A DNA stretch of 64,000 nucleotides from Diadema antillarum (taxonomy: Eukaryota): positions 62,001-126,000 of the forward strand of contig NW_027270908.1 of the NCBI RefSeq assembly GCF_040938485.1, written 5' to 3'. Under the pieces are notes generated by a model. The model was given only the letters and a program-made list of their open reading frames with translations. It had not been told where the DNA came from and ran no database searches. Shown one piece after another: positions 6,413 to 37,126 of the stretch (positions are counted from its first letter, which is position 1; every line of letters begins with the position of its first letter). The position numbers and the translations under genes are program-made.

Positions 6413-7758
6413 ATGTCGTATCTGTTTACTTTGTTGGTGATTGCTGCCATTTTACATGGCGAAGTTTTTGCAGCCGTTAACGTTCATGCGGCAGATTTTA
6501 GACAGAGTACAACTAGAAGTCAGAAGAGGACAATCTTGTCTGGCAAAACTGTTTCTCATCGATACAGACGACAAGTCCAAAATACCAACCCTTCATTTGA
6601 CAGCATGATGTATGTAGGAAGAGTTCCTGAAAACGAGGGTCCAGGATACATTGTGACAACGATCACGGCAACCGACAATGATGATGGCGACAACGGGCGG
6701 CTCACCTACAGCATGACGGCTCAATCGGATGCTCGGAGTGGAGCCATGTTTGACATCAATCCAAATACAGGTTTGATAGTGACGACAATGGCTCTCGACA
6801 GAGAAACGATAGAGTCTCATACATTTCGTCTCACTGCCACTGACCACGGCACACCACCAAAATCTGCCACCACCAACCTGACCATTCATGTGGATGATCG
6901 CAATGACCACAACCCCATATTTGAGCAGCCCATCCCTGTAAATATAACGAGTCAGGTTACAGATACAAGGAGTGTCGCACCTATTTTCCAAAACTCGACT
7001 TACAGTGTTTTCGTCAGTGAATCTGTTCCCGTTGGCCATGTTGTTGTTCAAGTTTCAGCCTCCGATGGTGATGCGGGATCCAATGCTGCAATAAGCTTCA
7101 GCATGGATGATATACCGGAGTTTGAAATCAATGAACATTCAGGAGAAGTACACACCCGTTTGCAGCTGGACCGTGAAACAGTGTCTCACTATGTATTAAC
7201 TGTAACTGCAACTTGCCATGGAGATATTCCCCAGCAGTCCAGAGCACTCCTTCAAATTTCCATTGAAGATATCAATGATAATCCACCTATCTTTCCTACA
7301 TCTCATTATAAAGGAGAAATTGAAGAAATCTGCCCTCTTTACTCTACTCTGCTGACAATATCTGCTTTGGATGCTGATACAGGTAAATTTCTGTTGTTTG
7401 CATTAGATTTTTACGATAATTTGGATTTTGACTCAGAAGATTGATTCCCATCGCTTTGAAGGCAGCTTTGTAGTACTTCTTGTTTGTTTGTTTGCTTGTT
7501 ATTTTTTCTTTTAAAAAAAGAAAAAGTTTTTGTATGTATAGGTATGGAGTGGGGAAGACACATCATAGATGAAATAATGATCCAAACTTTGATTTGACCC
7601 TAAAAATGGCCTATTTTTTTAATGTCATGATATTGGCACGCACATACAACATACAGACTGAAATAAAAAGGAAGCTAGTAGGCCTATGTGGATTTACTTC
7701 AAATGAAACAATATCTTTTTCAGATTTAATTCCCTACAAATAATGTACTCTTCAGTGA

Positions 7759-7795
<37 letters not shown>

Positions 7796-10700
7796 TCTTC
7801 TCTTTTATTATTATTATTTTTTTTCAGGATCAAATGGTGAAGTCGGGTATACTTTTGAAGGGGGGTCTGATGCAGATGGGCGGTTTGTCATAGATGAGAT
7901 GTCCGGCACTGTTCGTGTTGCTTCATTGCTGGACCGCGAGTCAGTGGCTGCATATGACTTGGTGGCATATGCTTATGACCGAGGTGTTCCTTCCTTGAGA
8001 ACGGCAGTGCCGATCTCCGTGGAGATCCTCGATGTCAATGACAATCCACCATCATTTACCCGGAAGGAGTACTTCTTCACAGTCAAGGAGAATCGTGTTC
8101 CAGGGGAATGGGTGGGTGAAGTGACTGCCCTTGATCCGGACTCCCTAGATAATGGCCATATCAGCTACACCATCTTGGATGAAGATCTTTTCCCTTTTGA
8201 GATACATTATGCGTCCGGGATGATCACTACACTGGAAATACTTGACTATGAATCTCGCAGAGAGTATGAGCTTGTCATTCTCGCTATCAATGTACCATAT
8301 TTTGCTGATGTGATCGTTCACATCGGTGTGACGGATTACAATGATAATATGCCTATTCTGAATGACTTTGAGATATTTTTGAATAGCTATGAGGGTACCT
8401 TTTATGAAGGTGATGTCGCAAAGGTACCTGCAACAGATCCTGACATTTCAGATGTGCTGTGGTACTCCATTATACGCGGAAATGACTACAATCATCTAAT
8501 CTTGAATGAATCGACTGGTGGAATAAGGCTTCACCGGTTTCTCCGGAGACGCCTCTTTATTTTACCACAGACTACTGAGTTCATAGTAAAAGCATCTGGT
8601 AAGGACTATCTTTACATTGATTTTTTTTTTGTGCGTGTATGTGTGTGTTAGTGAAATTCTATGATTAGCTGATCACTATATTTCGCAGATTTTCTCTAAA
8701 CAGGGCACTTCTATATGATGCAATAATTGCATGGTATATATCCATTAGATTCATACTGACAACCAATGCAGAAAAAATAAAGCTCACCTTTGATTTTCTT
8801 TGAGAACAAGATTTTGCCCATGGTTCTAAGTTCATACAATACCATTCTGCAGATGTGTTATTTAACTTCAACTGAATAAGAAAATGTAGAAAATATTGGA
8901 ATAACCTCAGCAATGCCAATATGCTTTGATGCTCTTTTCATTTACAGTAGTGAAAATGTTATCTCCATTTCATCTTTTCTTTGTTCATTTATAGACGGAA
9001 TAAATGTAGTGACAGCACTTGGCACGTTCCACGTGTTCTTAGTGACTGCTGACATGCTCGCCAACAGTGTGACGGTTCACATGGAGGGCATTCAGTCCAG
9101 CGAGTTCCTGTCCTCAAAGTTGGTCCACTTCACTGAAACCATGGAGAGGATCATCCCTACACACCGGGACTTCATCCATGTCTTTGGCGTCCAGTCGGAA
9201 GGCCCTGGACTCCTGAGCGTCACCTTTGCGGCACAGCGCCCCGACGGCACTTTCTTCACCTCTCAGCACCTCCAAGAAAGGATATACGTCAAACGAAACC
9301 AGCTCTCCTCGGCGCTTGGCGCCACCGTTCTGCCGTTCAGTGACGACCTCTGTCTGCAGGAGATATGCAGTGGCTTCCACCAGTGCGTGGCAACGGTCAG
9401 CTCCTGGACTCCAGGTGAGGTCATTGCCACTGCAACGGTGATCTTCCATTCCGTCCTTCCCGAGATCCTCTACAGTTGCGTCTGTCCTCCAGGGTATACA
9501 GGAAACTACTGCCTCACAGAGGTTAACTTCTGCTACTCGAGCCCTTGCGCCAATGGAGGTACCTGTATTCAGAAAGAGCAGGGGTACACTTGCTTGTGCC
9601 AAGATGGATTTACAGGTAGGCTACAGAATATATGCATACTCAAAATGTGTGCCATTCATTAGGAAGTCTTTTATTGTGTGTGTGTGGAGGGTGAGGGGGT
9701 TGGAAGTGGGAAGCGAAGATGAGAGAATAGAAAAATTTGAATGGAAAATTAAAAAGAAATGTATTGTAAAGCATTACATTTTCAAGACCATGATTCAGGC
9801 CTCTTTCTGGAGAGTTCTTTATTATGTCCCATGAGGTACATAATTATAATGTACAAACATTGACCATTGTTGAAGTTTTGCAATGTCTACGAGGTGTCTA
9901 AAATGGAATTTGATTTATAGATGTCTTCACATACTTGAGTATGTATTTCAGTCACTGAAGATTTTCCAAGGATAAAGGCACTCGATGGGATCCAAACCAG
10001 GGCTGGCGGAGCGTTTTCAAAAGGTGGGGGCCACTTCCGGGTTTCATGAGCTAACAAAAAAAAAAAAAAAAGCCTTCAGCGCAACTTCTGGTGGCACTTC
10101 TAGGTTTCTTCTGCTGAGAAGCCACAACAACAACAGCAACAACAACAACAACAACAAAAAAGGTCTTCAACCCCCCTCCCCCCCAAAAAAATAACCTTAC
10201 TGCGCTCACACTTCAAGGTCTATATTTATTTTTTGAGTGCCACTTATGCACTTCCGGGGTAAAAAAAGTGGGGGTGGGGGAGGGCCCAAAGTGGTGACAC
10301 CTTATGTATTCCTTTGTATGGTGCAAAGGGGCCTAAGCGCCCCCCCCCCCCCCCCCGGCATCCCCGGTTTCGCCGGCCATGCAAACTTGGGACCTGTAAT
10401 TGAAAAGTCAGGAGTCTCATCAACTATGCTGCAGTGCCCCCACAAAATTTATTCACAAATATTAGATGGACTCCTCATATATTGTGTTATCACAAACACA
10501 CTCGCACACACGCACACATTTCTAAAATTTGCCTTTGCCATCTGTAACAAATGGTACATTTCATATGATAATGGTGGATGATTATTTTTTTGTTGCAAGT
10601 GAGTAATGGGAGTGAGTATATTATGTTGTAGATTTTGATCTCATTTGGTAGATTCAACTGAGTTACCATACATCTAGTAACATGCTAACTGTTTTCAGAC

Positions 10701-13700
10701 TCATTGATGAGGATGCAATTGTATCTCTGATGCTGTGAATCAGGCAAAGTATATCAAGTGAAGTATCCAAACAGCAATATATCAGATTCATATCAACTAT
10801 TTCCAGAGACCTACTCTTGACTGAATTGAGAGGTCTGCTGGTGTTGCTCAGCTTCAGTCAATGGATACTGCAAAGATTTGATGGTACAGAGACGTGATTA
10901 TGTTACATATGGGTCAGTTAAACAGAAGCTGCAATATGAACAAATCAAATTTCTGTTTTCTGTTTCTTGAAGTGGCACATCTTATTTGTTCTAAGTCTCT
11001 CTTATAACTACTCATCACTTGGACTGCTGGTAGCAGCTCCTCTTGAAAATCACTCCACCGCCTACACCTGCCTTGGTGTACGTGCGCTTGTGTGAGTGCG
11101 TGGAAATGTTCGTGTTTCTCCATCTGGTTTTTATCACTCTTGTATTATGCTACCCTGCAAATTAATCTTAGATATAAAAACAACATTACAAATTCTGTTT
11201 GAACCCATGCCAAATGTTAAAATTCACTGTTTCCTTCAGAGAGCAGAGTTTGAAACCTCTAGGGTTCTTCAGGGTTTAACAGCTCTTCACTGCACTGAAA
11301 ATGTGAGGGTAGGATGATATTTTGACCGATTTACCGGTACTATAGAGTGCCACCTTGAATCGAGAAGGTCAGAATGAAGTGGCATCTTTTGTGAAGTTGA
11401 TCTTATTTCAGTGAGCTTGCAAGTTTTCCTGTGCAAATGATGATATCTGGGACCAGTTGAGATTATGAGAGTGCACTGTACACCATAGTGAAATGATTAT
11501 GCTTATGTGTGTTTATTTCTTGTCACACTTTATGCTTATCTTTTTCATCTGCCTTTTGCCATATATTAGTTTGGTTCCCTTTAACATCCCTGAATTGTTT
11601 TTGTATGTGCTGATTCTATTCTTATGTGCTGATAACAACAGTGTCCTGTGTACAACAAGTGTGTTCAGGATCTTGAAGGAATTCAAACTAAGTTTCCCCA
11701 TAATTAGTGACATTTTGATGATGTGATTTTGTGATGATGGAATTTTGTCACATATCATCTTGCTATCTCGAATCAGCTCCTCAGAATTTCATTACATATG
11801 TGATATATCTGGATTCAGTGTATATGTAGAGAAACTGAGATTATATGGAACTGATTTATTCATTAAGTTTGCACAAGATCAAAAAGACATCTATACCAAA
11901 ATGTGCCAATTTGAGATAGAAAAAGGAACTGCAACAATGTGTTGCTGATTTAAAGGACACGTAGGAACTTCATTGTCTTCTGAAATATATCGACTTGTTA
12001 AGAATTAGCTGCAAATCAAGCATGTAGGGTCTTTTGAAAAATCTGCATAAATTCATCATGAATAAAAAAAACCAACAACAACTTTGTTCTTCTAAAGGTT
12101 TCATTAATCCAAAACAAAGTAAGGTTCGTAATTCTGAATGTCTGTTAGTACGCACCTTTTTAAAATTTTCAGATTAATAAACCTTCAAAATATCAAACTT
12201 TTGAAATAATGAATCTGTTTTCATTTTTGGATTAACCAATCTTTGGAATTATCAACACCATACCAAGTATTAGCCCTCAATTTGTTATGACTTTGTTGTT
12301 GTTGTTGAAATGATTCAGGTGTAAACTGTGAGACAGAAAACTACTTTGGTGGAGAGTTTGATTGGATCTGCCATGACCTTGACCTCTCTGATGGACCCTA
12401 CTGCAAGATGAGAACACGGAGCTTCATGGGGGATTCACTTATGATGTTCCCCTCCCTAACTCAGAGAGTGAGGTTCCAACTGTCCGTAAGGTTAGAATTG
12501 GATTGCCTTTTCCATGAGTATTTCAGTTTTCATACAATTAGATATCTTGTGTGTATGTACCACACAATGATAGCATAGAACTCTGTGTGCACATAATCAT
12601 AAGTGGTGGTAAAAGTAGGGAATTGCACAGCACACCACACATCCCCCCAAATTACGACGATACAAGTCATTGATGGACTTTACTGGAAAGGAAGATGAAG
12701 AAGGAGAAGAGAGGTTGTTAAGTTAAACATATTCATATGCACACATGTATTCATGTGTGTGCATATATATCTTATATAAAGGGTTGGTGAATGTTAGTGA
12801 AGGGGGAAAGAAGTCAGAGTTCACTTTCTGCGGTCTGAAACTGAATCATAGTGAGTGATTCATTCTCCTGTTAAGCTTTGCCACCCGCAAGCCGAGTGGA
12901 ATGATCTTCTATAATGGATGCTACAACCAGCAGCATGACTTCATCGCCCTTGAGATCGTCGACGATCAGGTGCAGTTCTCCTTCTCGACAGGAAGTGATG
13001 TCACCACGGTAACGGCCAGCAGAGTGGGAGGAGTCAGTGACGAGCAGTGGCACACGGTTGTCATCGAATACTATTTGATGGTAGGTACCATGGTACTATT
13101 TGATGGTTGGTGTGTTCAGTCAATTTTTATATGTGCAACAATTTAATCGTGAATTGCGTCCTCGGTGATTCCTGTCACCCGTGTACTTTCTGTTTAGTCC
13201 ACAGTTGAAGAATTTTCCTTCCCTTAGAATACTACCCTACCACAATGACTACATTATATTTGTAGTAAATTTTTTTTTTGTCACTATCGCAGAGATTGTG
13301 GAATTGAAATTCTACATTATGTTACATTTCTGGAATATATGTAATCTTTATTAAGTGTGTATATTTATTGTTATTGATACTAACAGACTGCTACCATTAT
13401 TCTGGATGAATGCGACGCGGCCATTGCTCTCGCATATGACGGTGATCACCCTGACTACAGCTGTGCTGCCTCAGCAACTGGGAGTGGGGAGTACAGGTAA
13501 TGGTGGTGGGGGGGGGGGGGGGGAGGTATGCATAAAATAATGTGCTACTTCTGATCTGACATCAACTGTGTTTGTTTGTTTGTTTGTTTGTTTGTTTGAT
13601 TGTTTGTTCACTTCCATCTGAGAAGATGGCTGGATAGCCCATATTCAGCTATGCTAAACTGGTCTTCCATGGGGTCCAGTTGGATGTGAGGTGGGACCAC

Positions 13701-16700
13701 TTCACTGGGTTAAACACCCTGCTCTTTGCGATGAATGAATAAAGCGTGATCTTTTACGTGCATGAGCTGTGACTCTCTCATACACGGTACCTCCGTTTTA
13801 TGTCCTATCCGAGGGACAGAGTGTTTTGCCTCTTGCTAGAGGGGACGGTATGTTTACACACAACATTGCTCAGTCCAGACTTGGGTTTGAACCCGGGTCC
13901 TTAGGATCGTGAGGCAGACGTGCTACCGACTGAACCAACTCACCGCCCTGCGTATGTGTCATGTTCTTTAAATGAAAATGACACATGTTCTCTAAATGAC
14001 AGATTTCTGTCAATTTGCTACAATTTTGTCAGTAGCAAAGCATAGCCCAGTGTGTAGAATGTGTAGAGCAATTACTTCCACAAGGCAGACCGCAGTATGG
14101 GTATGCATAGGGTTAAATCTGAGATGTATTCATAACCTAATAAAGTAGGATAAAAAATGGTAAAATGAGAAAGTATTTTTGTCTCATACCGATTCATAAT
14201 GTGGCTTGCAAGGATGTATATTACAATTGACACTAAGCTCCACAGTTTAGACCCTTGTAAAAGTAGTTTGCTTTTGGTTTGGGTTATTGTTTAATTTCAA
14301 ACAAGAACAAACTTATACACAACATGACATACTTGGATACATATCCAAAGTGCAGTATCAGATACAGAGTATACTGATAGTGAACATTTTAGCATTATTG
14401 TTTGCAGTGATGGTATTTGAATCGATGTGCATGAATAAAAGGTGAAATAATAGCTTTACAAGAGTTGCTACACACTGTACATCTCAGTGTTATTTGAAAT
14501 TTACTTCTTGTTTCATGAACCCCACTGTATACTTTGCCAAGTTTGACTATCTCATTTTACATTAATAACGTAATACCTATGTGCTTTTGTGGTTTGAATT
14601 TGTTGATTTCATTCAGAATTAGTCCCTGTTAATGTCAAGACGCCCTCATGCTCTTTTTAGAGAGTGATAAATTCTAATCAGGATGAAAACATTCTATATG
14701 TTTTCATTTTCACTTAAGTCAATTAAATAGAGATAGGTGGTCAATTCATTTGTGATGTTAAACACAAAAAATTAGATTTCTACATGGTTATTCTTTTGAA
14801 AAACACCATTCAAATTCATTTTTCAAGTCTATTCATTTTATTTATCAGAAGAATGTAATCTAACAAAATGTTTGCATTTCATATACACATCAGAACATAG
14901 TTTAAATATAACAAAGCATGTAACAAAAATACAAAAAGATGATACCAGATTGAGAAATACAATTCCCTTTCTTTCAAGGTTAATTGACTTAAGTAGTCCT
15001 CTAATATGATTGTTTGTCTTCATTGTCAAAAAAAAATGAGAGATTTTTATTTTTTATTTCTTTATCCTTTTGTGTTTGCAGGGCACTAAAACATCTTTCA
15101 ATTTATTCTATCTGTAGGTTGTTGGACCTGACTGGACCATTCTTTCTGGGCAATCTTCCAGACATCTCCAACTCCAGCCGAGCTCAGGGGGAGGATTTGG
15201 ACTTTGACGGTTGCATCCGGGACGTCTACATCGACAACGAGCTCCTCGATCTCGCCACCAACGTGGAGGACGTGGGCACCCAACCCGGCTGCCCGCACAA
15301 GTCCGACTTCTGCGAGTCAGACCCCTGTCACACGGGAGCCACTTGTGAGAGCGGATGGGACCGCTACACCTGTCACTGTTCCTCCCAGAGTGGAGGGGTT
15401 AATTGCCAGGAAAGTAGGTTCTGTCTGTCGGCAATTTCTCTTGTCCCTAACAATGCCTCTTTTTTGGTATTACACAATGATTAATGCTTTGCTCTCCAAA
15501 GTGTGACTTTTGATGCATCCGCCTGATGCACCAAGTGTAGCTTGTGGCACAAATGCAAGTGCAGTGCATAAAGCCAGTAAAATACATAGGATGTGATACA
15601 TCGTGCTTTCTTCTATACCCATTATTGCACAGAGTTCTGACACTTCTTGGAAGACAACAAAGATGAATTAAGTCACAACTGGTATAAACAATTTATCCTG
15701 GTCTGCACAGCTTATATTCAGTGTCTGTAAAATCAGTCGGATGGTGTGGAGTTTTGCTCACAGTGCATCAAATAAAAAATAATGAACAATGTCATGCCTG
15801 GATTGTAGGTGTATTTCTGTGAGCTCACATTTGTCTGTAGGAAATCTCAAATAATGTCAGTAATTATATTGATATTATTCTATCCATAAAGAAACAGGAT
15901 CTTTAGTAGATAAATGTTTTTAAAAAAGATCTGATTGCAAGAACTTACCTCAAATATGATATGTAGAACATTCTTTGGAAAGATGCAGCATTAATTTATA
16001 CCATTTTTTCCAGAAGATTCCATTTGGTGGCAGTATTAGAGCATTTGTCAACTTTGACATAAAACTACCACTGAGTGAAGCGATCTGGAGTGAAAGTGGT
16101 CAGCAGAATTATTCTCATGTCATTGTCTTTGCATTTAATCATATTTTTCTCTTTATCTGTACAAAACAGGAAATGCAAATATATTGGTCATGAATTGCGT
16201 ATATCACTGTGACTAGAAATTTTAAACCCTTATATATATATATTTGCTTTAATACCATGTGCAGTCTTGTTTTTTCCTTCTTCTTTCCCACTCCTTATTC
16301 TACTTCCTTTATCCCTTCCTCTTTTCCTTCTTCATTTTTCTCATTTTCATCTTTGTCTTATACGAGTAAAAATATGTTATATATTGCAATTGTATGATCT
16401 TACAATGAGTAGTATTGTTTTTTTTCCATGTTGAAGCAATGTTAGATCCTGTTCGTGTCCAGAATGATGGCTACATGACCTTTGACACCAACGAGACAAT
16501 CACCCTACCGTGGACCAATCTCATCGCTTTCCGCACTAGGGACCCCAGTGGAGTCTTGATGTTTCTTGAGTTGACAAACGATGTCAACATTCGAATTGAG
16601 GTTTGTTTTGGGAGACACACAAATGAAATATCCAAACACATCTTTTATACTATGTCTGTCTTAGGACATTCAACGTAATGCAATGCAATTGCACAATGCA

Positions 16701-19700
16701 ATAGCTTATAAATACGAGTCTACACTCCTTCCTAGGTAGCTGTATCTCATAGATTCTTCTTTTTTTATCTGCAAAGGTAGTGTGGGTTATTTTTTTTTCT
16801 CTCTCTCTGATGTGGTAGATCATGGATGGTGTGACATCCTGTAAGCCTGTAAAATGCCTTCTTCTCCTGTTTATGGGACATTTTAAGAGTTTTATTGCAA
16901 AATGAGCTAACTCCATTCTCGTTAAGTTGAGACATTTGTGATTAAAGCTGCTAAAAAACAAAGAAAATAATAAAGTACAGGATATATTTAATCATGACTT
17001 CCAAGATATTCCTTGTTATGTCACAAGTGAAGTGTTACTGGAAAGGATTAATTTTGCTCGATCTGATGATGGACTTACATGTACTTTAAAATGTTTAGAA
17101 ATGGTGCCTAGCTCATTTGCGATAAAAGTCTTAATTTATTGAACATGTGATAAGAGCAGCAAATGGTAGTTCTCGATATACAGCAGAAAGAAAGAACTGA
17201 ATATCTAACGAACTGTTCACAGACTATCAGAAATATAGAACATAGAAGATTTGCATCTTCAAAGAGTTTCCAATCACTCTGACAGGCCACGTAGCAGGAC
17301 GGTGCACCTTGCAGTCTAGGCTGAAAGACACAAAACATTTCTCTGTTGAGATCTCAAACCCTTGTATACTTGATTGTTTTTGCTTCCATCTAGTATTGAG
17401 CTCACTCTTGCACACCTGTCTAAGTCTTATGGTCTAATTAGGGTGCATTAAATGGATATCATTATTTTTTTGTGGTATACATTATAGAATGTGTCTTCTT
17501 CCTCGTATCAGTTAGAATGGAAATACTGTGGGAAGATCTTTGTGGTTCAAAAGTCTTCATCAGGTGGTATATTGCCAAGTTGGAGCCAATTAACTTTATT
17601 GAATTTGGCAGAGTAACAAGTAGTGAATGTAAGTTTACCCGCGGATGACGAGTCCCGCGTATACTCAGGCAGGTGTCTATAGGAAATGTGTGTTGTAGCA
17701 AAATTGGCCTATTCTCAACGGGTTAATGAAGCATGATAATATTGTATATCTTATGTGCAGAGACCCCAACTCTCCTGCTTTCGACGGGAGATCTCCCGCC
17801 TGTGTTGATATACATATATGTTTGAGAAGTCTTTGCGATGATAAGTCTTGAGCAAAGACTAACCTGCCAGCTAAAGCTGGATGTAACATGATATGCCCCA
17901 TGTGCAAAGGACACACTGGAAGAACCAGTTGAATAAAGGCACTCACACAGTTCACATCAACTCTACAATGTCTCCTCATTACTAAGAATCCTCCTTTCCA
18001 ATTAAAGGCATATAAATGCCAAGACATGGTGTCAGAGTGGTTCAACTGTCCAAGTCATGGTGTCAGTCAACTGTCTACATCATTCTGAAGTACAGAAGGG
18101 ACTAGGACAAGGAATAATCCACGCAAGAAACAGGCTAGACCGTTTCATTTGAAAGAGTGGAGGATGCATGGAGCTATGTGTACATTAGCATGCAGTACAG
18201 TAGCCAAGCAGCAGTGTGTTGAGATGTACTAGCCCAGCGTGTGTGTGTGTGTGTATGACATACTCGTACCTGAATGTGCATGACTGTATTGTGTGTCCAA
18301 TGACCTGCATCAGCACTGTGGCAGCTAGGAACAGAAAGTTCTAGAGGCCAAATGACCAGACTGCACAGTGCATGAGGTATTGGGAACACTACAGCCAGTG
18401 ACGTGGCCTTGATAAAGTGTAGACTAGGCTTGGCCTTATGAGTTAATGTTAGAGCTTCTTGTGAGTTATGTGCCAGCTGGTCAAGCCCATGGGCTAGTGC
18501 CTTAAACTGCCGGTGAACAGAGCGATAAGGATTCGGCCTAGATTAGCCACATGTATATGATGCAACATACTCACCTCGTGAAAGTGTCGAATGATTGAGC
18601 ATAAGATTACTTGTTGAAAAGATACAGTTTTCTGCTAATTGTTAACACTGTTCATGTGAGTGAATGCTCAGAGAGTGAACATGGCAAACTTAACCCAACC
18701 AGCACCACTAGATTTGAGGGGTAATTTGTCTGAGAATTGGAAGAGATTCAAGCAAAGATTCACTCTGTATAATGTTGCTTCTGGAATGTCAAGGAAAGAT
18801 GATAAAGCACAAACATCAATGTTGTTGCATGTGATAGGTGATGCTGCCCTTGATATATACAACACATTCACATTTGCTGAGGGTGATGAGATGAAGTTGG
18901 AGAAAGTGCTTGAACAGTTTGAGAAATATTGCACTCCCAAGAAGAATGTCACGTATGAGAGGCATAAATTCTTTACCAGATCTCAGGGTGTGAGTGAGAA
19001 CATTGATCAGTATGTCACAGAATTGAGAAATCGTGCACAATCGTGTGAATTCGGAGAGTTGACTGATGGTCTGATCAGAGATCAGGTAATTTGTGGAATC
19101 ACAGATGGTGGTTTGCGTGAGCGTTTGCTCAGAGAGGATGATTTGACACTTCAAAAGGCATTGCAAATTTGTCGTGCTGCTGAAATTACCAGAGCTCAGG
19201 CACAAGAGCTTGGTTCAAAGGCAGATGTGTCAGTCCCTGTTGATGCTTTGAACAAAAAGAAAAAGGCAGTCAATCCCGGTAAAAGATCAGGACCTCCAAG
19301 GTGGAAGCAAAAAAGTCAAAGTCAAAGTCATGGTCAGAATTCCCAGGCTTGTGGCAGGTGTGGCAATCGACATGCCATGTATTCATGCCCTGCACAAGGA
19401 AAGGTGTGCAAAAAATGTGGAAAAATGAATCACTTCGCGAAGTGTTGCAAAAGTCGTGTTCAGGTAAATGAACTACAGAGTAATTCCAAGGATGAGAGTT
19501 TTCTTGTTGATGTCGTCGAGTCACAGGAGTCATGTGACGAATGGAAAGTGAATCTCATTGTGAATGAACGTCAAGTGCTGTTCAAATTAGATACAGGCGC
19601 GCAAACGAATCTACTACCAGAGAGTGTGTATCAGACGTTGAAACCAAAACCAAAGTTGTCATCGGCGAATGTCAAGTTGACAGGGTACAGTGGAGTTGAA

Positions 19701-22700
19701 ATTCCAGTGAAAGGTCGTTGCTTTGTACAGGTGAAGCACAAGAATTTGACAGAGAATATGTCGTTTCTAGTGACTCCCGGAAATCGTCAACCATTACTAG
19801 GTTTGCAAGCGTGTGACAAGTTGAAACTGGTGAAACGTGTGTTGAATGTCGCAAAAAACACACATGATGAAAAAATGTCGGTCGAAGACTATGAAGACGT
19901 GTTTGAAGGTCTAGGATGTGTGCCCGGTAAGCACCACATCACAGTGACAGAAAATGCGAGACCTGTCCAACACGCATGCCGAAAAGTACCGTTTCCGATG
20001 AGAGAAAAACTCAAAGAAGAGTTAGACAAAATGGAACGCATGAACGTCATTGAGCCCGTAGATACGCCCACTGACTGGGTGTCGTCTCTCGTGATCGTAC
20101 AGAAAAAGACCGGTCAACTCCGAGTTTGCTTAGATCCGCGAGATCTAAACCGCGCTGTAAAGCGAGAGCATTTTCAGCTACCGTCGAGAGCTGAAATAAC
20201 CGCGCAGTTTGCCGGAGCGAAGTACTTCAGTAAACTAGATGCATCCAGTGGATTCTGGCAGATTCAGCTGGATGATGAAAGCTCAAGGTTGTGTACCTTC
20301 ATCACACCTTTCGGAAGGTACCGATTCCTGAGACTTCCGTTCGGAATATGCAGTGCTCCAGAGGTGTATCACAAGATAGTGCACCAGCTCTTTGCGCATA
20401 TTCCAGGAGTGAACACAATGATGGACGATATCATTGTATGGGGAGCTACACAGGAAGAGCATGACCTCAGGCTGAAAGAAGTTCTAGAGACAGCGAGAAA
20501 GAACAACTTGAAACTCAACCGAGAAAAATGTGAGTTCCGTGTCAACAAGCTGACATTCATCGGAGATGTCATCAGTGATCAAGGAGTTCAGCCTGACCCC
20601 AAGAAAGTGGCAGCCATACAGAACATGGAAAGACCACAGTGCAAGCAGGATGTCCAGAGATTCCTCGGCATGATCAACTACCAAGGAAAGTTCATCGCTG
20701 ACTTGTCAACCAAATCAGAGCCCCTCAGGAGCCTTTTAGAGAAAAGGAATGAGTGGGTGTGGACCGATGCACAGGAACATGCATGGCAAGAGCTGAAAAA
20801 AGCCTTGTCAACAGAGCCAGTGCTGCATTTCTACGACTGTGCAAAACCAACCAAGCTGTCAGCTGATGCATCAAAGAATGGGCTCGGAGCAGTGTTGCTT
20901 CAGAAGCATGACCAAGATTGGGTCCCCATAGCGTATGCATCTAGAGCCATGACTGATGCAGAGACAAGATACGCGCAGATCGAGAAAGAACTGCTAGCTA
21001 TCACGTACTCATGTGAAAGATTTCACCAGTACATATATGGACGACAGGTTGAGGTAGAGACAGATCACAAGCCGCTAATACCCCTGTTCGTCAAGCCCCT
21101 GTGTGACTGTCCCCTGCGCATCCAGCGACTCCTAATCAGAGTTCAAAGGTATGACTTGAAAGTGTCATACACACCAGGGAAGTACATGTACACAGCGGAT
21201 ACCCTCTCCAGAGCAGTCGACCCAGAGTCAAAACCAGATGTCATGAGAGAGGAAGACATCAAAGTCTATGTAGATGCTTTCGTGATGAACATGCCAGTCA
21301 CGTCAAACAAACGAAGCCAGTTTGTAGATGAGACAAAGAAAGACACAGCACTACAAGAACTCTTAGCTGTCATCAGAGATGGATGGCCAGAGAGAAAACA
21401 ACAGTGTCCAGTCTCAGTCAGAGAATACTGGAACATCAGAAGTGAACTGTCAGAGGCACAAGGCATCATCTTCAAAGGAAGTAAGATTGTTGTACCAGCT
21501 ACAATGAGACGTGAGATGCTGCAAAAGATCCATGAAGGGCATTTGGGAATTGAAAAGTGCAAGAGACGTGCAAGAGATGTCCTGTACTGGCCCCGGATCA
21601 ACCACGATGTAGCAGAAATGGTGCAAAACTGCAATGCCTGCCTCACGTACCAGCCAAAACAGCAGAAAGAGAGCCTTCAACCTCACATGGTACCCGATAG
21701 ACCATGGCAAAAGGTGGCCGCAGATCTGCTTACGCTGGACAACAAGGAGTACCTGGTGATTGTGGATTATTTTTCACAGTACATAGAACTGTGTTCACTG
21801 TCGACCACAACAAGTAGAGCAGTGATCAACAGTATGAAAGCTGTATTCGCCCGTCACGGAACTCCGTGTGAACTCATCACAGACAATGGACCACAGTTCT
21901 CAAGTCGTGAGTTCCAACAATTCACAGCAGAATGGGACTTTCGCCATACGACCACAAGTCCATATCACCCGCAGTCGAACGGTCAAGCAGAGAATGCCGT
22001 CAAGATTGTCAAAAACCTGATGCGGAAGTCCAAGCACAGCGGACAAGAAGTCCTTCGAGCTCTACAGGTCTACAGGAGCTCGCCACTAGAATGTGGAAAA
22101 TCGCCAGCAGAACTGCTCTTCAACAGGCGAATCAGAACAAATCTGCCTATGGCCGAAAAACTACTTGACCCCCAGCACATCAATGCTCGCTCGGTGAAGG
22201 AAAGGAAAGAAGGGCAGAAACAGAAGCAAAAGAAGCATTTCGACAAACATGCTCGTGACCTACCCCACCTGAAAGTAGGAGATCATGTCAAACTCCAAGA
22301 CATGAATACCGGCAGATGGTCACAAGGTGGTGTCATCAAGAAAACACTACCACATCGGTCGTACCTGGTCCAGACAGAGACTGGCGAGATTCGTCGCAGA
22401 AATAGGCGTCATCTTCGACCTGATCCTAGACGAGGCCAAGACGAGCGACAACCAGCGCAGAGGTACGATGACGACGACGACAACGTCAACGCCCCGATGG
22501 TAGACGAGACTACACGAAACGCGACGTCTGTGAAATCTACCCGAAGTGGACGCATCGTGAAGCCTCCCATCCGCTTAGATTTGTAAATAGTGAAACTAGA
22601 GAGGAAGAACTTTTCGCGAATTATTAAGACCGCTCGAGAAGAACTTTTCGCGAATTTGTTAGAGTTAATAGTTGAAACATGATGGACTCTAATGATAATG

Positions 22701-25700
22701 TAAAGACAGGATTTAGTTAAAATACGCGAAAGATTAAATACGCGCACTAAGAAGCAGTGAAACCCGGTTGTCGCATATGAACTCTAAACATTGAACTCAA
22801 AGAACTCAGTTATGAAACTACAGCAAAGATTTTGGATGTTTGAAACGCACATGCATGAAAGTCAAAAGAGTTAAAGTAAACTCTGAGAGGTTGTCATGTG
22901 TATGTAAATAGTCGATAACAATGTTATCTCCTTTTAAAGAAAGGGAGATGTGTTGATATACATATATGTTTGAGAAGTCTTTGCGATGATAAGTCTTGAG
23001 CAAAGACTAACCTGCCAGCTAAAGCTGGATGTAACATGATATGCCCCATGTGCAAAGGACACACTGGAAGAACCAGTTGAATAAAGGCACTCACACAGTT
23101 CACATCAACTCTACAATGTCTCCTCATTACTAAGAATCCTCCTTTCCAATTAAAGGCATATAAATGCCAAGACACCGCCGAAAGCCCAGTTTTGCAAAAT
23201 CTCCCGTTCTCCTGCTTGAGTTTTAATTTCTCCCGCCCTGGCTCTGTGTCTCCCACTTGAAATGATTTCTTACTTAATTTCATCGTACGTTGAAAAATGA
23301 GCCGTAGATAACACAAGAGAGCATCTAGAACCCTAGAGTTTCCAGGGTCCGCTAGGGGCCCTGGATCCCTGCTGCAAGGAATTTCGCACTTCGCGCTCGT
23401 GATGTGCGAGAAGCGCACATCAAGTTGGAGTCTCCCGTTTGCTAGGGGTTTCAGGAGGGAGAATCTCCAGATTAGAAGGTGCTTGGGGTTGGAGTCTCTG
23501 TATGTGTGTTGAGACACACCCTGCGTGTGTAAGCAAAAGGCTAAATTCAACATGTTGTTCCTAAAGAGTCTCATTGTTTGGCCCCCCTTGCAGTTGGTCG
23601 ATGGCTACATCCACTACGTCACCAGCTCAGTCAGTGTCCAGCTTGACCAGCGACCAGTCAGTGACGGGGAGTGGCATGACTTCTTGGCAGAGTGGGAGAA
23701 TAACACAGTGATTCTCTCAGTGGATTTTGATTGGGACCTGGTGAGTGTCCATGAGGAGACACTTTCAGCTAAGCTTTGTACTTGTTTAACAGAATTTTAG
23801 AATTGAAAAGTCTTCCATTTAGTAATAGCACATACTCTCCAACATTCTTGAAAAGAATGTTGGTAAAGGTAAAATAACAGTTATTGTTTAGATGAACACA
23901 TGTTGCACATTGAGGCTGACTTCAGTGTATGAAATGAAATAAGACAACTTATACATGTAGAACAGTGAGCTCCATATATCTATAAAAAAATGATAAAAAG
24001 TAAAGGCAGTTTAAAGGGTTTACATGTTTCCCAGTGTTTTCTAACAAAATTATATCTGTTAATTGTTTGTTCCTTCGGACGTGAATTAATGATGGTGCCA
24101 TGGTCCTTGGTCATATCGCCATGTTTGCTATCTTATGTAGATATTAAGTCCTTATGTTCAGAGAGGTGTGTAAACTCCAGTCTAATAAACATTTCCTGTA
24201 CTAACAGAGGTCTGTTCGAGCCTTGGACAGCCTTGACGGAGAGAGGGTGATCAGAGTGACGCTGGGAGGGATGTTGACAGAGGGCGCTCTCACCAATGGC
24301 TTCGCTGGATGCCTAATGGTATTGTTTCTGTCATCTCACCAGTGTGTTGATGACTGTGGGATAAATTATATCTTGCTAAGTGAAATAACCGGTACATGGT
24401 AGTATGAAAGTAGCATGAACATGGAGTGTGTAGATGTAGGTTTTAGTGCATGACATCACAGGACCCATTGAATATTCATGATCTCCTTAGGAAGCCATAG
24501 TTCAGAGATGAAACATCTCAGATGAATAAATGTATCAACAACCAGCTCGTTATTTTCATTTCAGATTCCAATCAAGAATAGCATAAATTTGAATGTAATC
24601 GAATTGAACATTGACTTTTGCAGTTTTGTATTCCATTATCCATGTACTTGTATTCAATATGATTTCATTCCCTTTTGAAGTTTGAAGTTTGAAGTTTATT
24701 ATTATCTATGTTCACATGTTTACATGGCATAATACATAATGAAAGACACCTGCATGAAATCATGATAAAAGGTACCAGAAAACAGCATGAATGCTAATCA
24801 AGTCTGATACCTGTCTAATACAAAGGTTCTAAAAAGGTAACAAGTACAGTACAATGAATACATGTAGCTCTAGTTTGAAAATACATGAAACATCAACATA
24901 TTTACATCTTTTTACATCATAATACATTAGTTTGAGTTGAAAACTTGACATAATACATTTTCTTTTGATCCCCTGTCCCCCGCCATCCTACCCAACCCTA
25001 CCCCTAGGGAATGTCCATCGGTGGTAGCCCCCTGGACCCCGCTGTGGGGGCGAGGACCAATGTGGAGGATGGCTGCAATGCCTCAGACTCCTGCCTGGAT
25101 GCAGACTGCCCCACCCAGAGCCAGTGTGTGGATCTGTGGGACCTACATGAGTGCCGTTGTGACAAAGGTGGGCTTTTCTCCCACACAGGTTCCATCTTGA
25201 TCCATCCACAGTCTGTCATAATTCTCCCAAACCACTGTTATTCTATTTTTCACTGGCATTTTAAATCATTATAATGTATTATCATTGCTCTCAGCTTCCA
25301 AGGATCAGACAAAAAACAGTGGAAATTGTAATGATTGTAGTAGACTATATAAGTTAGTCTGGCAAAATCTTTGGGTATACCTAAATATACAAAATAAAAT
25401 CTAGTAAAAGCTTGGGTTCTTAATAGATCACAGTAAAAGTGATCAGGGAAAGCAGATGAAAAGTGATTTTCATTCTTACTCATTTGAAGTTGGCATTTTC
25501 TGCAGCTCTGTAATGTATCTCTATCTGGAGTCTATATAATTCTGGTAAGTCTCTTTCATTCTTGTTTTTGGGTAGTTGACAGTATTTTTTGTTATTGTTG
25601 TTGCTGATCTGTCTTTAGTCCTGGAATAGTAATCCTTTGAAGTATCTCAGAAGTGAGCTGTGCCATGATGGGCAGGGCAGTGCACACTAGGTATGTGGAA

Positions 25701-28201
25701 TCAGTGGTGCAAGGTCACGTAATAAAATGTATAGAGCTTCTTCAATAATGTAATGTACAACAACACAGGAAAAGTCAGAGCAGCAACTCCTGATAACATT
25801 TGCAAAAATTTGATTCTTTGAATTTAAAAAATTGGGAGCATTTTCAACTTATTTTTCAGGTCATTTTGGCCCTGAATGCTTGTCAGCGTGCGAACTGGGT
25901 GCATGCCAGCACGGCTCCACCTGTGACCTTTCTCCGGAGACGGATCTTGGCTACAGCTGCACCTGCTCGGAGCGTTTCTATGGCGACCACTGCCAGCACA
26001 TGGTGGAGGAGTGCCCAGATGACTGGTGGGGATACCCGGTCTGCGGCCCCTGCGAGTGTGATGAGGAGATGGGGTTTGACCCCGCTTGCGACATGACCAC
26101 AGGGGAATGCCACTGCCAGGTGAGGACCAGGAGACTGGGACCTGGAACTCTGATTGTAGATTAGAATATTGGATTTTACAAAAAGTCCTCTTTTTTCTCC
26201 TTTAAAAATAAAAAGATTTTGAAATGCATGTTGTAGCCTATCTAGATCATATGATTTTGTTGAAATGTCTCACACTTGCATTATCTAAAGCCAAACAACA
26301 AAGCTGTTTTGTGACTTCTTTCTCAGTCTAAGAATTTGGTACTGTCAAATGTATGAGGTTCCATTTCTGTTTGTTATCAGGTATAAGTACAAAAGGAGTA
26401 TTATGCTATTCTGGCTATTTTTCTGATTAGTATAAGATTAGAAGTGCAAAAATGTTTATTGACAATATTACTGAAAAGGAAATGTTTCGTAATCATAATT
26501 ACTGTTGCTGTCCCCTACTTCTGGAACGGTATCCTTTTATTTGATTTTTTTTTTTTATCATGTGCTTGTTAAGCTAAAAATGACCTTTCTTGGATGTGAA
26601 GGCATTAGCAAACCATGAGGAAGAGAAAAGATGACCAAAAAAAAAAAAAAAATGAAACCAAACCACTCAAACTTCCTGCATCGTATACCCATGGATATCT
26701 TACACCAATTAAAATTCCCTTGGTATATATTATCAAGTGTTATCTCATTATTGTCAGATTTCAATGAAAGCGGTCTTGCATCTGACTCCTTCCACACAGG
26801 AACACTTCTATCGCCCCTTAGACAGTGACACCTGTTACCCCTGTGACTGCTATGAGGTTGGATCCTCCAGTCAAGACTGTGACCAACAGACCGGTCAGTG
26901 CTCCTGCAGGAGGGGGGTTAATGGCCGGCGATGCGATGCCTGTGATGACCCCCATGCAGAGGTCACAGCCAGTGGATGCGAAGGTAGTAACCTTGACCAG
27001 CTGAAACTATTTTCTTCTGGTTGATGTTCACTAAAAGAACAACTTTATGTTAGGATTTTTTAATGTGCTTTAAAAAAAAAAATTGCACATTAAATGATGT
27101 ACACCAAGGATTTTTTTTTTGAACAGGGGTCCATTTCAAGAAAGTCTTATGAGAGATGTTTCCTTCATATGACACAATTATGAGAGACTTCATGAAATGG
27201 ATTTACTTTTCTATATTGCTACATATGAGCAACCTCTGAGGTTAATGTAAAGACTTTTTTGCGATTACTTCATGAAACGAACCCGTGGTAGATTAGAAAG
27301 TTTGTTTACAATACCATCATCACTCAGTACTATAGAATACAGATAGAGATATATTTTGTAGCACTTGTTTATAAGATGTTTTCATGTTTTGAGTAATGAT
27401 ATCACATTCTAGGACTCTGGCTGTGAATCTGTAGCATTCCAAGCACACACATGCAAATACAAGCACACATTATGCCCTCAAAACCACATGAAAAATAAGA
27501 GAGAAATTTTGTTGTACAACAGTAATATATATCAGGTATATAAAAGACAATTGTACAAAACTAGTATATAAATATTTCCTTTTGCTACAATCAGTAGACC
27601 TAAAGTACTAAACACTGGACATTACTGGTGTATACATAAAAAATTGCCATGAACACATGTACATCTGTAATTTTGACATTGTGTGTGTTGGCGTTTTCTT
27701 TGATACTAAATGCAGAAATTTGTGTGGCACATTAATTTTTGCATATTTTGTCTTATTTTTGGCTAGAGCGAATTCTAAAACCCATTAAAAAATCTAATAA
27801 TCTTATCTGCATGTGTTGAATGGATTGAAAATTGAGCAGCGCAAATTCATTAACCTGCAAATATGTTTTTGAGCCACTCAATGTGAAAATTTTTCCACGC
27901 AAAAATATTAATGTTTACAGAATGTTATCCAAATTATTGTCCTTACAATACTAACTGTATATTTCACGTATATAACTGATTCTCTCTCTCTCTCTTCCCC
28001 TCCTCAGTTATCCATGGATTCTGTCCCAAAAACTTTGATGAGGGTCTCTGGTGGCCGAGAACCCAATGGGGCGGGACAGCGACTGTAGACTGCCCAGTGG
28101 GGAGCTACGGCACTGCTACTGCTACACGGTCGTGCGACTTTGAAAAAAGATGGCAGATGCCAGACCTATTGAACTGTACCTTGGAATACATGTATAAGTA
28201 G
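6413..28201 (+). CDS. CELSR: Flamingo/CELSR-derived cadherin-EGF-LamG protein, 14 exons, 1454 aa, lacking EC2-5 and lacking GAIN/7TM
   Basis: Hand-spliced exons, all GT-AG with matching phases: 6413-7382, 7828-8598, 8995-9615, 12319-12490, 12876-13080, 13387-13496, 15118-15413, 16437-16600, 23594-23740, 24208-24318, 25008-25167, 25860-26119, 26800-26983, 28008-28201 (total 4365 nt, TAG at 28199-28201). Segments are collinear with vertebrate CELSR as I recall it, e.g. LQERIYVKRNQL..LPFSDDLC, SFATRKPSGMIFYNG..HDFIALE, LDLTGPFFLG, CPDDWWGYPVCGPCEC, CPKNFDEGLWWPRTQWG. The symbol denotes family, not 1:1 orthology. Confidence 0.9.
9998..10381. mobile_element. MITE in CELSR-like intron 3
   Basis: Imperfect TIRs CAGGGCTGGCGGA / rc CATGGCCGGCGAA, 5-bp TSD CAAAC. 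Confidence 0.7.
13570..13948 (-). mobile_element. tRNA-derived SINE, probably Deu/Nin-domain type
   Basis: Head GGGCGGTGAGTTGGTTCAGTCGG (A box) and GGTTCAAACC (B box). The central GTCCCTCGGATAGGACATAAAACGGAGG..GCACGTAAAAGATC resembles the Deu domain as I recall it. (AAAC)n tail. Confidence 0.8.
17801..23174 (+). mobile_element. Intact Ty3/Gypsy (Mag/SURL-type) LTR retrotransposon
   Basis: 226-bp LTRs at 17801-18026 and 22949-23174, TG..CA, identical by eye. 5-bp TSD CCGCC. PBS TGGTGTCAGA at 18027 (tRNA-Leu-like). Polypurine tract AAAGAAAGGGAGA just before the 3' LTR. Confidence 0.96.
18681..22586 (+). CDS. Gag-Pol polyprotein of the Gypsy element (single ORF)
   Basis: Double CCHC knuckle (CGRCGNRHAMYSC..CKKCGKMNHFAKC), protease LDTGA, RT MMDD, RNase H DASKNGLGAVL/YAQIEKE/TDHKPL, integrase HHCC plus D-D-E (ADLL, TDNGPQF, NGQAE). 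First ATG at 18681. Confidence 0.95.
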   Translation: MANLTQPAPLDLRGNLSENWKRFKQRFTLYNVASGMSRKDDKAQTSMLLHVIGDAALDIYNTFTFAEGDEMKLEKVLEQFEKYCTPKKNVTYERHKFFTRSQGVSENIDQYVTELRNRAQSCEFGELTDGLIRDQVICGITDGGLRERLLREDDLTLQKALQICRAAEITRAQAQELGSKADVSVPVDALNKKKKAVNPGKRSGPPRWKQKSQSQSHGQNSQACGRCGNRHAMYSCPAQGKVCKKCGKMNHFAKCCKSRVQVNELQSNSKDESFLVDVVESQESCDEWKVNLIVNERQVLFKLDTGAQTNLLPESVYQTLKPKPKLSSANVKLTGYSGVEIPVKGRCFVQVKHKNLTENMSFLVTPGNRQPLLGLQACDKLKLVKRVLNVAKNTHDEKMSVEDYEDVFEGLGCVPGKHHITVTENARPVQHACRKVPFPMREKLKEELDKMERMNVIEPVDTPTDWVSSLVIVQKKTGQLRVCLDPRDLNRAVKREHFQLPSRAEITAQFAGAKYFSKLDASSGFWQIQLDDESSRLCTFITPFGRYRFLRLPFGICSAPEVYHKIVHQLFAHIPGVNTMMDDIIVWGATQEEHDLRLKEVLETARKNNLKLNREKCEFRVNKLTFIGDVISDQGVQPDPKKVAAIQNMERPQCKQDVQRFLGMINYQGKFIADLSTKSEPLRSLLEKRNEWVWTDAQEHAWQELKKALSTEPVLHFYDCAKPTKLSADASKNGLGAVLLQKHDQDWVPIAYASRAMTDAETRYAQIEKELLAITYSCERFHQYIYGRQVEVETDHKPLIPLFVKPLCDCPLRIQRLLIRVQRYDLKVSYTPGKYMYTADTLSRAVDPESKPDVMREEDIKVYVDAFVMNMPVTSNKRSQFVDETKKDTALQELLAVIRDGWPERKQQCPVSVREYWNIRSELSEAQGIIFKGSKIVVPATMRREMLQKIHEGHLGIEKCKRRARDVLYWPRINHDVAEMVQNCNACLTYQPKQQKESLQPHMVPDRPWQKVAADLLTLDNKEYLVIVDYFSQYIELCSLSTTTSRAVINSMKAVFARHGTPCELITDNGPQFSSREFQQFTAEWDFRHTTTSPYHPQSNGQAENAVKIVKNLMRKSKHSGQEVLRALQVYRSSPLECGKSPAELLFNRRIRTNLPMAEKLLDPQHINARSVKERKEGQKQKQKKHFDKHARDLPHLKVGDHVKLQDMNTGRWSQGGVIKKTLPHRSYLVQTETGEIRRRNRRHLRPDPRRGQDERQPAQRYDDDDDNVNAPMVDETTRNATSVKSTRSGRIVKPPIRLDL

Positions 28202-28433
28202 ACTATCTTTGTTGGGATGCAACAGCTCTTATGGCACCTTTCAACCACAGAGAAAAAGTAGGCACTGGGATTGATCAGCACAGTGGTTGCATACGCAAAA
28301 TTCACTACACAATATATGTGAACATGGAATAAGAGTTTAAATAATCATGGCGAGCCACAGTGATAATGTTTACTAATCAGCATTTTCAAGTGTTACTGTT
28401 GCCTTGGGCAAGGAACATCGCCATTAAATACCC

Positions 28434-28599
28434 GGGTCTAGGGCAAATACCCCCTGGGCAATTACCCCGGACCATTCCCCTGGCCCTTATCCTAATCCTA
28501 ATTCTGAACCTAATCCTAACCCTAACCCAAACTCCTAACCCTAAACCTAACCCTAACCCTAATCTTTACTCCAACCTTACCACTAACCAGTATTTAGCC
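28434..28599 (+). mobile_element. Dispersed repeat with degenerate (CCCTAA)n core, Helentron/HINE-like
   Basis: GGGTCTAGGGCAA(A/T)TACCCC start, telomere-like core, CAGTATTTAGCC end; second copy inverted at 37160-37333. Confidence 0.6.
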
Positions 28600-28829: not shown

Positions 28830-28835
28830 AATAAA
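28830..28835 (+). terminator. Candidate polyadenylation signal of the CELSR-like gene
   Basis: First AATAAA I could find after the TAG at 28201. Confidence 0.35.

Positions 28836-37090: not shown

Positions 37091-37126
<36 letters not shown>

Follow-up and report, generated by a model that had tools for sequence, protein, structure and literature searches.

A Diadema CELSR/Flamingo paralog under purifying selection that probably encodes a secreted ectodomain without the receptor half

Can a gene of the CELSR/Flamingo family persist as a functional unit when its reading frame stops directly after the HormR domain, ahead of the parts that define an adhesion G-protein-coupled receptor (GPCR)? 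This question is raised by a plus-strand locus within a stretch of 64,000 nucleotides (nt) of the sea urchin Diadema antillarum (contig NW_027270908.1, positions 62,001 to 126,000), which was analyzed as a whole and is referred to as the window; all positions given below are counted within it. Based on gene structure, comparison with the neighbouring full-length gene, selection analysis and sequencing reads, the locus is interpreted, with a probability of about 80%, as a Diadema-lineage CELSR/Flamingo paralog which is constrained and transcribed and which encodes a shortened ectodomain without the receptor, the product probably being secreted. The window represents animal DNA with a G+C content of ~38% and is 100% identical to D. 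antillarum contig JBFRCO010000020.1 (assembly GCA_040938485.1) over 38,201 bases.

Gene structure and the missing receptor half

An original prediction, made from the DNA letters alone, had proposed 14 exons splicing into an uninterrupted frame of 1454 amino acids, and this structure was reproduced. Exon boundaries in D. antillarum were transferred from the D. setosum orthologue, whose spliced model is exact, with sea-urchin CELSR proteins serving as guides. The truncated CELSR gene occupies positions 6413-28201; its spliced frame comprises 4365 nt, made up of 1454 codons and the TAG, and is free of internal stops, and all 26 splice sites are canonical, featuring AG acceptors and GT donors (Table 1). 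The translation matches RefSeq protein XP_071495430.1 of Diadema antillarum (P0491, "CELSR3-like") in 1454 of 1454 residues. The gene model is thus not new but is already a RefSeq model. Its RefSeq name, "seven-pass G-type receptor 3-like", is misleading for a product without any membrane pass and may be taken as a warning for annotation.

Pfam analysis of the product assigned four Cadherin domains, Cadherin_CELSR2_9th, an Ig-like domain of the DE-cadherin type (Ig_Shg), EGF, two LamG domains, EGF_laminin and HRM. Five of the nine cadherin repeats (EC1 and EC6-9) are kept, including the CELSR-type ninth repeat. They precede a block of EGF, LamG, EGF, LamG, EGF and laminin-type EGF domains and then HormR (Pfam, exons 3-14), and this arrangement is colinear, exon by exon, with that of the full-length CELSR encoded next to the locus (XP_071485724.1; P0494), hereafter termed the parent. 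When exon 3 was used as a library query, mostly multi-EGF proteins were returned, and the number of whole-length matches was four.

The putative signal peptide and the RYRR site of the original prediction were likewise recovered. The N-terminal hydrophobic segment covers residues 1-21 (Kyte-Doolittle value 2.2) and aligns with the signal peptide of the parent, so that the assignment is based on hydropathy and alignment. RYRR occupies residues 50-53 (nt 6560-6571), and RFRR is found at the equivalent place in the parent. As predicted, the frame ends with NCTLEYMYK and a stop directly after HormR, six codons past the HormR "NCT"; the Pfam HRM match spans residues 13-67 of the 73-residue reading frame of exon 14.

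It had further been claimed that no GAIN, 7TM (seven-transmembrane) or other anchor exon exists in the gap-free 3.9 kb before the convergent AUH gene, and this claim held for a much larger region. Using 11 full-length CELSRs, from urchin to bird, as tblastn queries, no match to GAIN, GPS or 7TM was obtained in the whole window on either strand, and permissive settings for the HormR-GAIN segment returned nothing beyond exon 14. GAIN, GPS and 7tm_2 were all identified by Pfam in the parent, and none of the three in the truncated product. Moreover, a Kyte-Doolittle scan of the product revealed no transmembrane-like segment besides the signal peptide, the remaining hydropathy peaks being a cadherin beta-strand-like stretch (residues 471-474) and an isolated value at residue 585 in the EC9 region. 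According to the same scan, the C-terminus is not hydrophobic and carries no signal of the glycosylphosphatidylinositol type. Identity of the 3' flank to that of D. setosum amounts to 77-85%, which corresponds to the level of introns and not to that of exons.

Table 1. Features of the window, with positions, strand, content and basis of assignment.
Feature	Positions	Strand	Content	Basis or remark
Inverted exon-1 copy	4760-5770	-	Open frame of 336 residues with own signal peptide, RYRR, EC1 and EC6	Inverted repeat of 856 nt at 89% identity
Exon 1	6413-7382	+	Start codon, predicted signal peptide (residues 1-21), short pro-region, RYRR, EC1, junction from EC2-EC5 loss, EC6, start of EC7	Pfam Cadherin; donor gtaaat; spliced contig of run X2
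Exon 2	7828-8598	+	Remainder of EC7, EC8, start of CELSR-type ninth cadherin	Pfam Cadherin, Cadherin_CELSR2_9th; X2 contig 7831-8597
Exon 3	8995-9615	+	Remainder of EC9, Ig-like domain (Flamingo-box region), EGF	Pfam Ig_Shg, EGF; X2 contig 8994-9617
Exon 4	12319-12490	+	EGF, start of LamG1	tblastn to D. setosum CELSR; AG/GT boundaries from D. setosum model
Exon 5	12876-13080	+	LamG1	Pfam Laminin_G_2, E=4.5e-15
Exon 6	13387-13496	+	Middle part of LamG1	tblastn, 62% to D. setosum full-length CELSR (P0153)
Exon 7	15118-15413	+	End of LamG1, an EGF	Pfam; 79% amino acid identity to D. setosum full-length CELSR (P0153)
Exon 8	16437-16600	+	Start of LamG2	tblastn and splice mapping
LTR (long terminal repeat) retrotransposon, Ty3/gypsy-type, intron 8	17801-23174	+	LTRs of 226 nt, 100% identical; open gag-pol frame of 1308 residues at 18660-22586	Not part of the gene product
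Exon 9	23594-23740	+	LamG2	Pfam Laminin_G_2
Exon 10	24208-24318	+	End of LamG2	tblastn and splice mapping
Exon 11	25008-25167	+	EGF	93% amino acid identity to D. setosum full-length CELSR
Exon 12	25860-26119	+	EGF, start of laminin-type EGF	Pfam
Exon 13	26800-26983	+	Laminin-type EGF	Pfam EGF_laminin, E=6.6e-10
Exon 14 (coding part)	28008-28201	+	HormR, tail LEYMYK, TAG at 28199-28201	Pfam HRM, E=2e-10; tail and stop common to D. setosum and second haplotype
End of similarity to parent	28186-28201	+		blastn homology stops at ~28185, ~24 nt before the parent exon-14 donor
3' flank to AUH	28202-32077	+	No CELSR-like coding sequence; candidate poly(A) signals at 28423, 28830 and 29096	No N
AUH (enoyl-CoA hydratase family, PF00378)	32078-51076	-		Convergent; 3' bound of the locus in all three assemblies; annotated range starts at ~32078
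LINE-type (non-LTR) retrotransposon	44361-49495	-	Open frame of 1268 residues and upstream gag-like frame	In AUH intron

These results bear directly on the possibility that the locus encodes a full receptor after all, either through splicing from a weak donor near 28192 or 28198 to distant GAIN/7TM exons or because its 3' half has been misassembled away. GT dinucleotides are present at both positions, and the full-length Diadema gene spans 164 kb, so that very long introns do occur in the family. However, both GT sites obtained poor donor scores. Furthermore, the 36 kb downstream of the stop contain AUH on the opposite strand and a MAPK gene but no GAIN/7TM coding sequence on either strand, and the only receptor exons nearby are those of the parent, located upstream and on the opposite strand. 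In addition, the exon loses its homology to the parent before the parental donor is reached.

The misassembly variant can be judged from further copies of the locus. The D. antillarum assembly retains both haplotypes, as indicated by its size of 1.75 Gb versus ~703 Mb haploid and by 84% duplicated BUSCOs (PMC13511894; bioRxiv 10.64898/2026.05.24.727502), and a second sequence of the locus (L004) is therefore regarded as the other haplotype of the same animal. The HormR exon, the same stop, ~4 kb of flank and the convergent AUH gene are common to the window haplotype, the second haplotype and the independent chromosome-level assembly of D. setosum. Since the three sequences show an identical order, a local misassembly, which the original prediction had named as a threat to its interpretation, was excluded. 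Encoding of a full receptor is accordingly very improbable and largely refuted.

Several candidates for a continuation or a parallel case were tried and rejected. Read-through past the TAG was suggested by a tblastn alignment extending to 28258 with Saccoglossus TFSALATMLRELESGEKK. This candidate was dismissed because only 10-13 codons follow NCTS in the HormR exon of Saccoglossus, Antedon and the Diadema parent, which would place the "EKK" match in the exon after it; the end of nucleotide homology to the parent was also counted against it. A hydrophobic frame at 28345-28629 was considered as an anchor exon and discarded as a translated degenerate telomere-like repeat that is not alignable with D. 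setosum. Such a degenerate (CCTAAC)n stretch occurs twice in the window, in opposite orientations, at 28480-28570 just past the stop and at 37236-37330. Finally, a protein of 1890 residues which ends 11 residues past the HormR "CTS" (P0123) was evaluated as a second, independent HormR-terminated CELSR. Its contig features a GAIN/GPS/7TM frame 54 nt further on, and it therefore belongs to a full-length transcript whose frame was interrupted by intron retention or by an error.

Origin from the neighbouring full-length CELSR gene

The parent gene is located on the minus strand and starts ~7.2 kb upstream of the ATG of the truncated gene in both haplotypes. The order of the locus in both of them is full-length CELSR (-), a single-exon cadherin frame (-), the truncated gene (+) and AUH (-). 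The truncated gene is a head-to-head, partial, inverted duplicate of this neighbouring full-length CELSR, comprising exon 1 through the HormR exon. All intron positions from exon 2 to exon 14 match those of the parent. Exons 5-13 also agree with it in length and intron phase, apart from differences of whole codons; exon 4 deviates (172 nt versus 235). The position of the intron between exons 1 and 2 is also common to Saccoglossus CELSR. Over 857 shared codons, the truncated copy and the parent are 70% identical. Their introns are no longer alignable, and the truncated gene extends over 22 kb versus ~164 kb for the full-length Diadema CELSR. For comparison at the DNA level, the 3' half of the D. 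antillarum parent was used instead of the 164-kb parent gene of D. setosum.

Within exon 1, two in-frame losses were recognized, corresponding to parent residues ~36-258 (pro-region) and ~420-823 (EC2-EC5), by which EC1 became joined to EC6. Residues 54-165 are 86% identical to parent residues 292-403 (EC1), and residues 189-300 are 71% identical to parent residues 831-942 (EC6). At the opposite end of the gene, the HormR exon of the parent continues with NCTSDSFASLQNT followed by the donor gtgagt, whereas the copy features four to five unrelated codons and then TAG. The simplest reading of this difference is a rearrangement breakpoint inside the HormR exon, which may have arisen from the duplication itself or from a later deletion.

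Taken together, a course of events can be proposed in which the 5' part of the neighbour underwent inverted partial duplication, most of the pro-region and EC2-EC5 were then lost, and the break within the HormR exon supplied a few new codons and a stop. The retained signal peptide would direct the product into the secretory pathway, cleavage would occur after RYRR as in cadherins, and the protein would be released in soluble form outside the cell.

A further copy of exon 1 lies in inverted orientation upstream of the truncated gene (Table 1). In comparison with exon 1, its synonymous divergence (dS) is 0.31 and its ratio of non-synonymous to synonymous divergence (dN/dS) is 0.33. All three assemblies list it as a cadherin gene of its own, and contigs of the sequencing run X2 described below contain its sequence. 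It keeps GT at the position of the exon 1 donor and is located upstream of the full-length gene on the same strand. This copy could represent a putative alternative first exon of the full-length gene, yielding a CELSR with fewer cadherins.

To place the duplication in time, a maximum-likelihood tree was considered, as had been suggested along with the original prediction. In this tree, the truncated proteins group together next to their sister, the Diadema full-length CELSR (support 100/99). Lytechinus branches outside this pair, which itself falls within the echinoderm CELSR clade. Hence, the copy arose on the diadematoid side after the camarodont split and before D. antillarum and D. setosum parted. 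dS is 0.89 between the truncated gene and its parent and 0.17-0.20 between the two species. The D. setosum orthologue (XP_072174166.1) likewise comprises 1454 amino acids and 14 exons, ends with the tail NCTLEYMYMYK and shows 88.8% amino acid identity, its locus being colinear through introns and 3' flank. Outside Diadema, no orthologue of the truncated form was found among proteins of 800-2544 amino acids, an absence that carries little weight given that few diadematoid genomes are annotated. The gene appears restricted to one urchin lineage and is fast-evolving.

Selection, transcription and the second haplotype

In order to evaluate whether the frame is maintained, the two Diadema species were compared codon by codon. 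The Nei-Gojobori dN/dS between them is 0.28 (167 synonymous and 182 non-synonymous changes; Fisher test versus neutrality, p=8e-29), and values of 0.28-0.31 were obtained across three pairwise comparisons, including the second haplotype. Per exon, dN/dS is ~0.2-0.3 in 12 of the 14 exons, the exceptions being exon 4 (0.42) and exon 10 (1.86). In a neutral simulation, the 348 observed substitutions were placed at random positions of the coding sequence; on average 10.3 stops arose, and the frame stayed open in none of 2000 runs. Moreover, exons are more conserved between the species (90-96% identity) than introns (78-89%). These findings show purifying selection on a protein, albeit relaxed. Because the 14-exon frame is intact in two species and no neutral run remained open, a chance origin of the open frame is excluded. 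The argument of the original prediction that intact frames and splice sites, maintained despite large structural edits, speak against a simple pseudogene is supported by these results.

Regarding transcription, a search for RNA runs with this gene listed none. Three public runs containing the sequence (X1, X2 and X3), all labelled "DNA?", were available, and their reads were examined over positions 6300-9700. In run X2, most of introns 1 and 2 (7440-7781 and 8694-8921) show zero read depth, as compared to ~35 over exons 2 and 3. Furthermore, an X2 contig of 2050 nt matches 7257-7383, 7831-8597 and 8994-9617 of the window, with joins 7383/7831, 8597/8994 and from 9617 to the first letters of exon 4. 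The intron of 396 letters skipped by this contig begins with GT and finishes with AG, the rest of the contig (530 nt) is as long as exons 4-6 taken together with the first part of exon 7, and at most three differences per exon from the window were counted. Because most of introns 1 and 2 lack depth and the contigs are exactly spliced, X2 is most likely an RNA library. If X2 is RNA, the contig is direct evidence of a spliced transcript (junctions of exons 1 to 4) of a window-type allele in another individual. Expression, which the original prediction had left to be established for the whole messenger RNA (mRNA) including its poly(A) site, is thereby supported for exons 1 to 3 and the joining to exon 4. 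Among the sequences and reads examined, none of the outcomes listed with that prediction as contrary to it (onward splicing to GAIN/7TM exons, no expression, a dN/dS of about 1, local misassembly) was encountered.

Several observations weigh against the preferred interpretation. With respect to transcription, X2 is labelled "DNA?", and if it were DNA the joined contig would represent a processed copy instead of an mRNA, a reading disfavoured by the absence of intron depth. The transcript evidence is also confined to the 5' part of the gene, where the reads were examined. With respect to evolutionary rate, the tip branches of the truncated gene are 0.046-0.049 versus 0.004-0.006 for the parent, which is ~10-fold faster amino acid change over the same species split; its stem branch is 0.40 versus 0.054 for the parent, and a dN/dS of 0.28 is relaxed for a CELSR. 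In the second haplotype, GC replaces GT at the intron-1 donor and an additional T (+1) in a T-run of exon 2, near position 8375, causes a frameshift; its RefSeq product (P0490, 1380 amino acids) is flagged LOW QUALITY and skips 72 residues. Run X1 contains the additional T in contigs as well, at a minority depth of 8.1 of 36.2; it was found in neither X2 nor X3. It is probably a real allele of that animal and, if so, either one intact copy suffices or the gene is dispensable. Finally, adhesion by mouse CELSR1 requires CADH1-8, which also suffice for it and probably act as an antiparallel dimer, and contacts between CADH9 and GAIN close the stretch from CADH9 to GAIN into a module (PMC12038025). 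Because EC2-5 and GAIN have been lost, neither the EC1-8 dimer nor the CADH9-GAIN module of the canonical CELSR1 structure is possible for the Diadema product (PMC12038025).

Some of these points would fit a transcribed relic in transition to a pseudogene, without a function of its own and open only through slow or recent decay. The faster evolution compared to the parent, the GC donor and frameshift of the second haplotype, and the two large in-frame deletions together with the receptor loss, which remove the known functional modules (PMC12038025), are all in line with this explanation. The same applies to exon 10, the only exon in which non-synonymous changes exceed synonymous ones (11 versus 2). 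By contrast, a relic would hardly be expected to keep a frame of 1454 codons in 14 exons intact in both species despite a dS of ~0.2 between them and ~0.89 to the parent. The dN/dS value, the outcome of the neutral simulations, the complete set of canonical splice sites, the higher conservation of exons and a transcript that is present and correctly spliced in X2 likewise speak against decay. A relic is considered unlikely, and the constrained, secreted paralog remains the favoured explanation.

Beyond the two lesions, the second haplotype forms a mosaic with respect to the window. Identity is complete in exons 4-7 and 9, amounts to 93-95% in exons 1-3 and falls to 91% in exon 14; the overall dS of 0.107 is ~4 times the genome-wide heterozygosity (PMC13511894). 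Over exon 14 and 1.3 kb downstream (28008-29350 versus 28639-30521 in L004), the haplotypes share 76-91% identity and are as divergent from each other as either is from D. setosum; from 29740 on, the flank is 96% identical. Old polymorphism, gene conversion and introgression are candidate causes of this pattern.

Possible role, related systems and neighbouring elements

By descent the product is a CELSR, but it is not an adhesion GPCR according to the defining features of that class, namely GAIN/GPS and 7TM. With full-length CELSR (the parent and D. setosum XP_072181687.1, P0153) it shares the predicted signal peptide, RxRR before EC1, EC1 and EC6-9, and the order of Flamingo-box, EGF, LamG, laminin-EGF and HormR regions. 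Full-length CELSR differs in having a complete pro-region, EC2-EC5, GAIN, GPS, 7TM and a cytoplasmic tail; the truncated copy keeps a short pro-region and none of the other parts.

For the secreted product, a role as extracellular binding partner or modulator of CELSR-type adhesion is put forward tentatively. EC1 has remained 86% identical to that of the parent and the whole EGF/LamG/HormR surface is kept, both of which would be compatible with a modulator. Since both canonical interaction modules are incomplete, a new function is as likely as a plain homophilic decoy; the latter is no more probable than a new extracellular role, and each of them is a possibility well short of an expectation. 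The wider idea of a stand-alone secreted outer half of Flamingo, kept several times longer than the species split and acting between cells without the receptor half, is held with similar reserve. If it applies, the outer half may bind full-length CELSR or its partners and thereby tune planar polarity or adhesion, and the gene would be a natural counterpart of engineered 7TM-less adhesion GPCRs, on which the case for ectodomain signalling independent of the receptor has been built.

It is also conceivable that the product is not freely soluble: full-length CELSR, or some other membrane protein, would bind it and retain it at the cell surface or within the secretory pathway, where it would serve as a cis subunit or dominant-negative partner. 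The similarity of its EC1 to that of the parent is in line with such an association, the two genes are arranged head-to-head ~7 kb apart and could share regulation, and CELSR ectodomains are reported to dimerise via the cadherin part and the globular CADH9-GAIN part (PMC12038025). The incomplete interaction modules and the lack of an anchor or hydrophobic segment argue against retention, which is regarded as quite unlikely, and release of the product is preferred.

In the literature searched, no description of a 7TM-less CELSR gene was found, and a survey of echinoderm cadherins left CELSRs out. Among the nearest analogues are soluble decoy receptors such as sFLT1, which, like the presumed Diadema product, are ectodomains of membrane receptors that are secreted and could bind the partners of the receptor (PMC11870409). 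The Diadema gene differs in being a separate duplicated gene with a remodelled ectodomain and in its evidence of constraint. By contrast, sFLT1 is produced by alternative processing from the gene of the receptor, and its ligand-binding part is complete.

For human ADGRE4P (EMR4) and ADGRF2P, which are annotated as pseudogenes, transcripts for truncated proteins have been reported (PMC13197933). Their adhesion-GPCR frames end before the 7TM part and would yield ectodomain-only products as in Diadema (PMC13197933). In contrast, they are single original loci recently disabled in one lineage, whereas the Diadema gene is an extra copy beside an intact parent and is subject to purifying selection. 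Furthermore, C. elegans LAT-1 lacking TM2-7 demonstrates that the outer part of an adhesion GPCR can act without the receptor half, e.g., as a ligand for a neighbouring cell (PMC3776922). That construct is engineered and membrane-anchored and needs the GPS, whereas the Diadema protein is natural and has neither an anchor nor GAIN/GPS. By analogy, LAT-1 makes a receptor-independent role for the Diadema protein plausible.

Adhesion GPCRs are thought to act in two ways, by 7TM signalling and by 7TM-independent action of the ectodomain, and the latter rests mostly on engineered truncations. A natural, constrained, ectodomain-only CELSR beside its intact parent would therefore provide a test case for determining which parts of Flamingo suffice outside the cell and whether planar polarity or adhesion responds to a soluble form. 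In addition, the locus offers a clean example of a new gene formed by partial inverted duplication with a breakpoint that appears to lie inside an exon.

Within and around the gene, further elements were recorded (Table 1). Neither D. setosum nor the second haplotype contains the LTR retrotransposon of intron 8, which marks it as a very recent and polymorphic insertion. At the empty site of the second haplotype, an overlap of 5 nt points to a target-site duplication. The sole run of N in the window comprises 161 letters (38481-38641); the assembly paper reports no gaps, so that the run presumably reflects deliberate masking. In the AUH gene, two adjacent, similar exon-like frames containing GADLKERI were observed on the minus strand at 39795-40413. 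They look like a tandem exon duplication and are possibly mutually exclusive exons. An AUH intron also harbours the LINE (long interspersed nuclear element)-type retrotransposon, whose long open frame looks, as judged from its sequence, like an endonuclease joined to a reverse transcriptase. Finally, a first coding exon resembling that of p38-MAPK (~51494-51745, +) is arranged head-to-head with the first exon of AUH (50816-51076, -).

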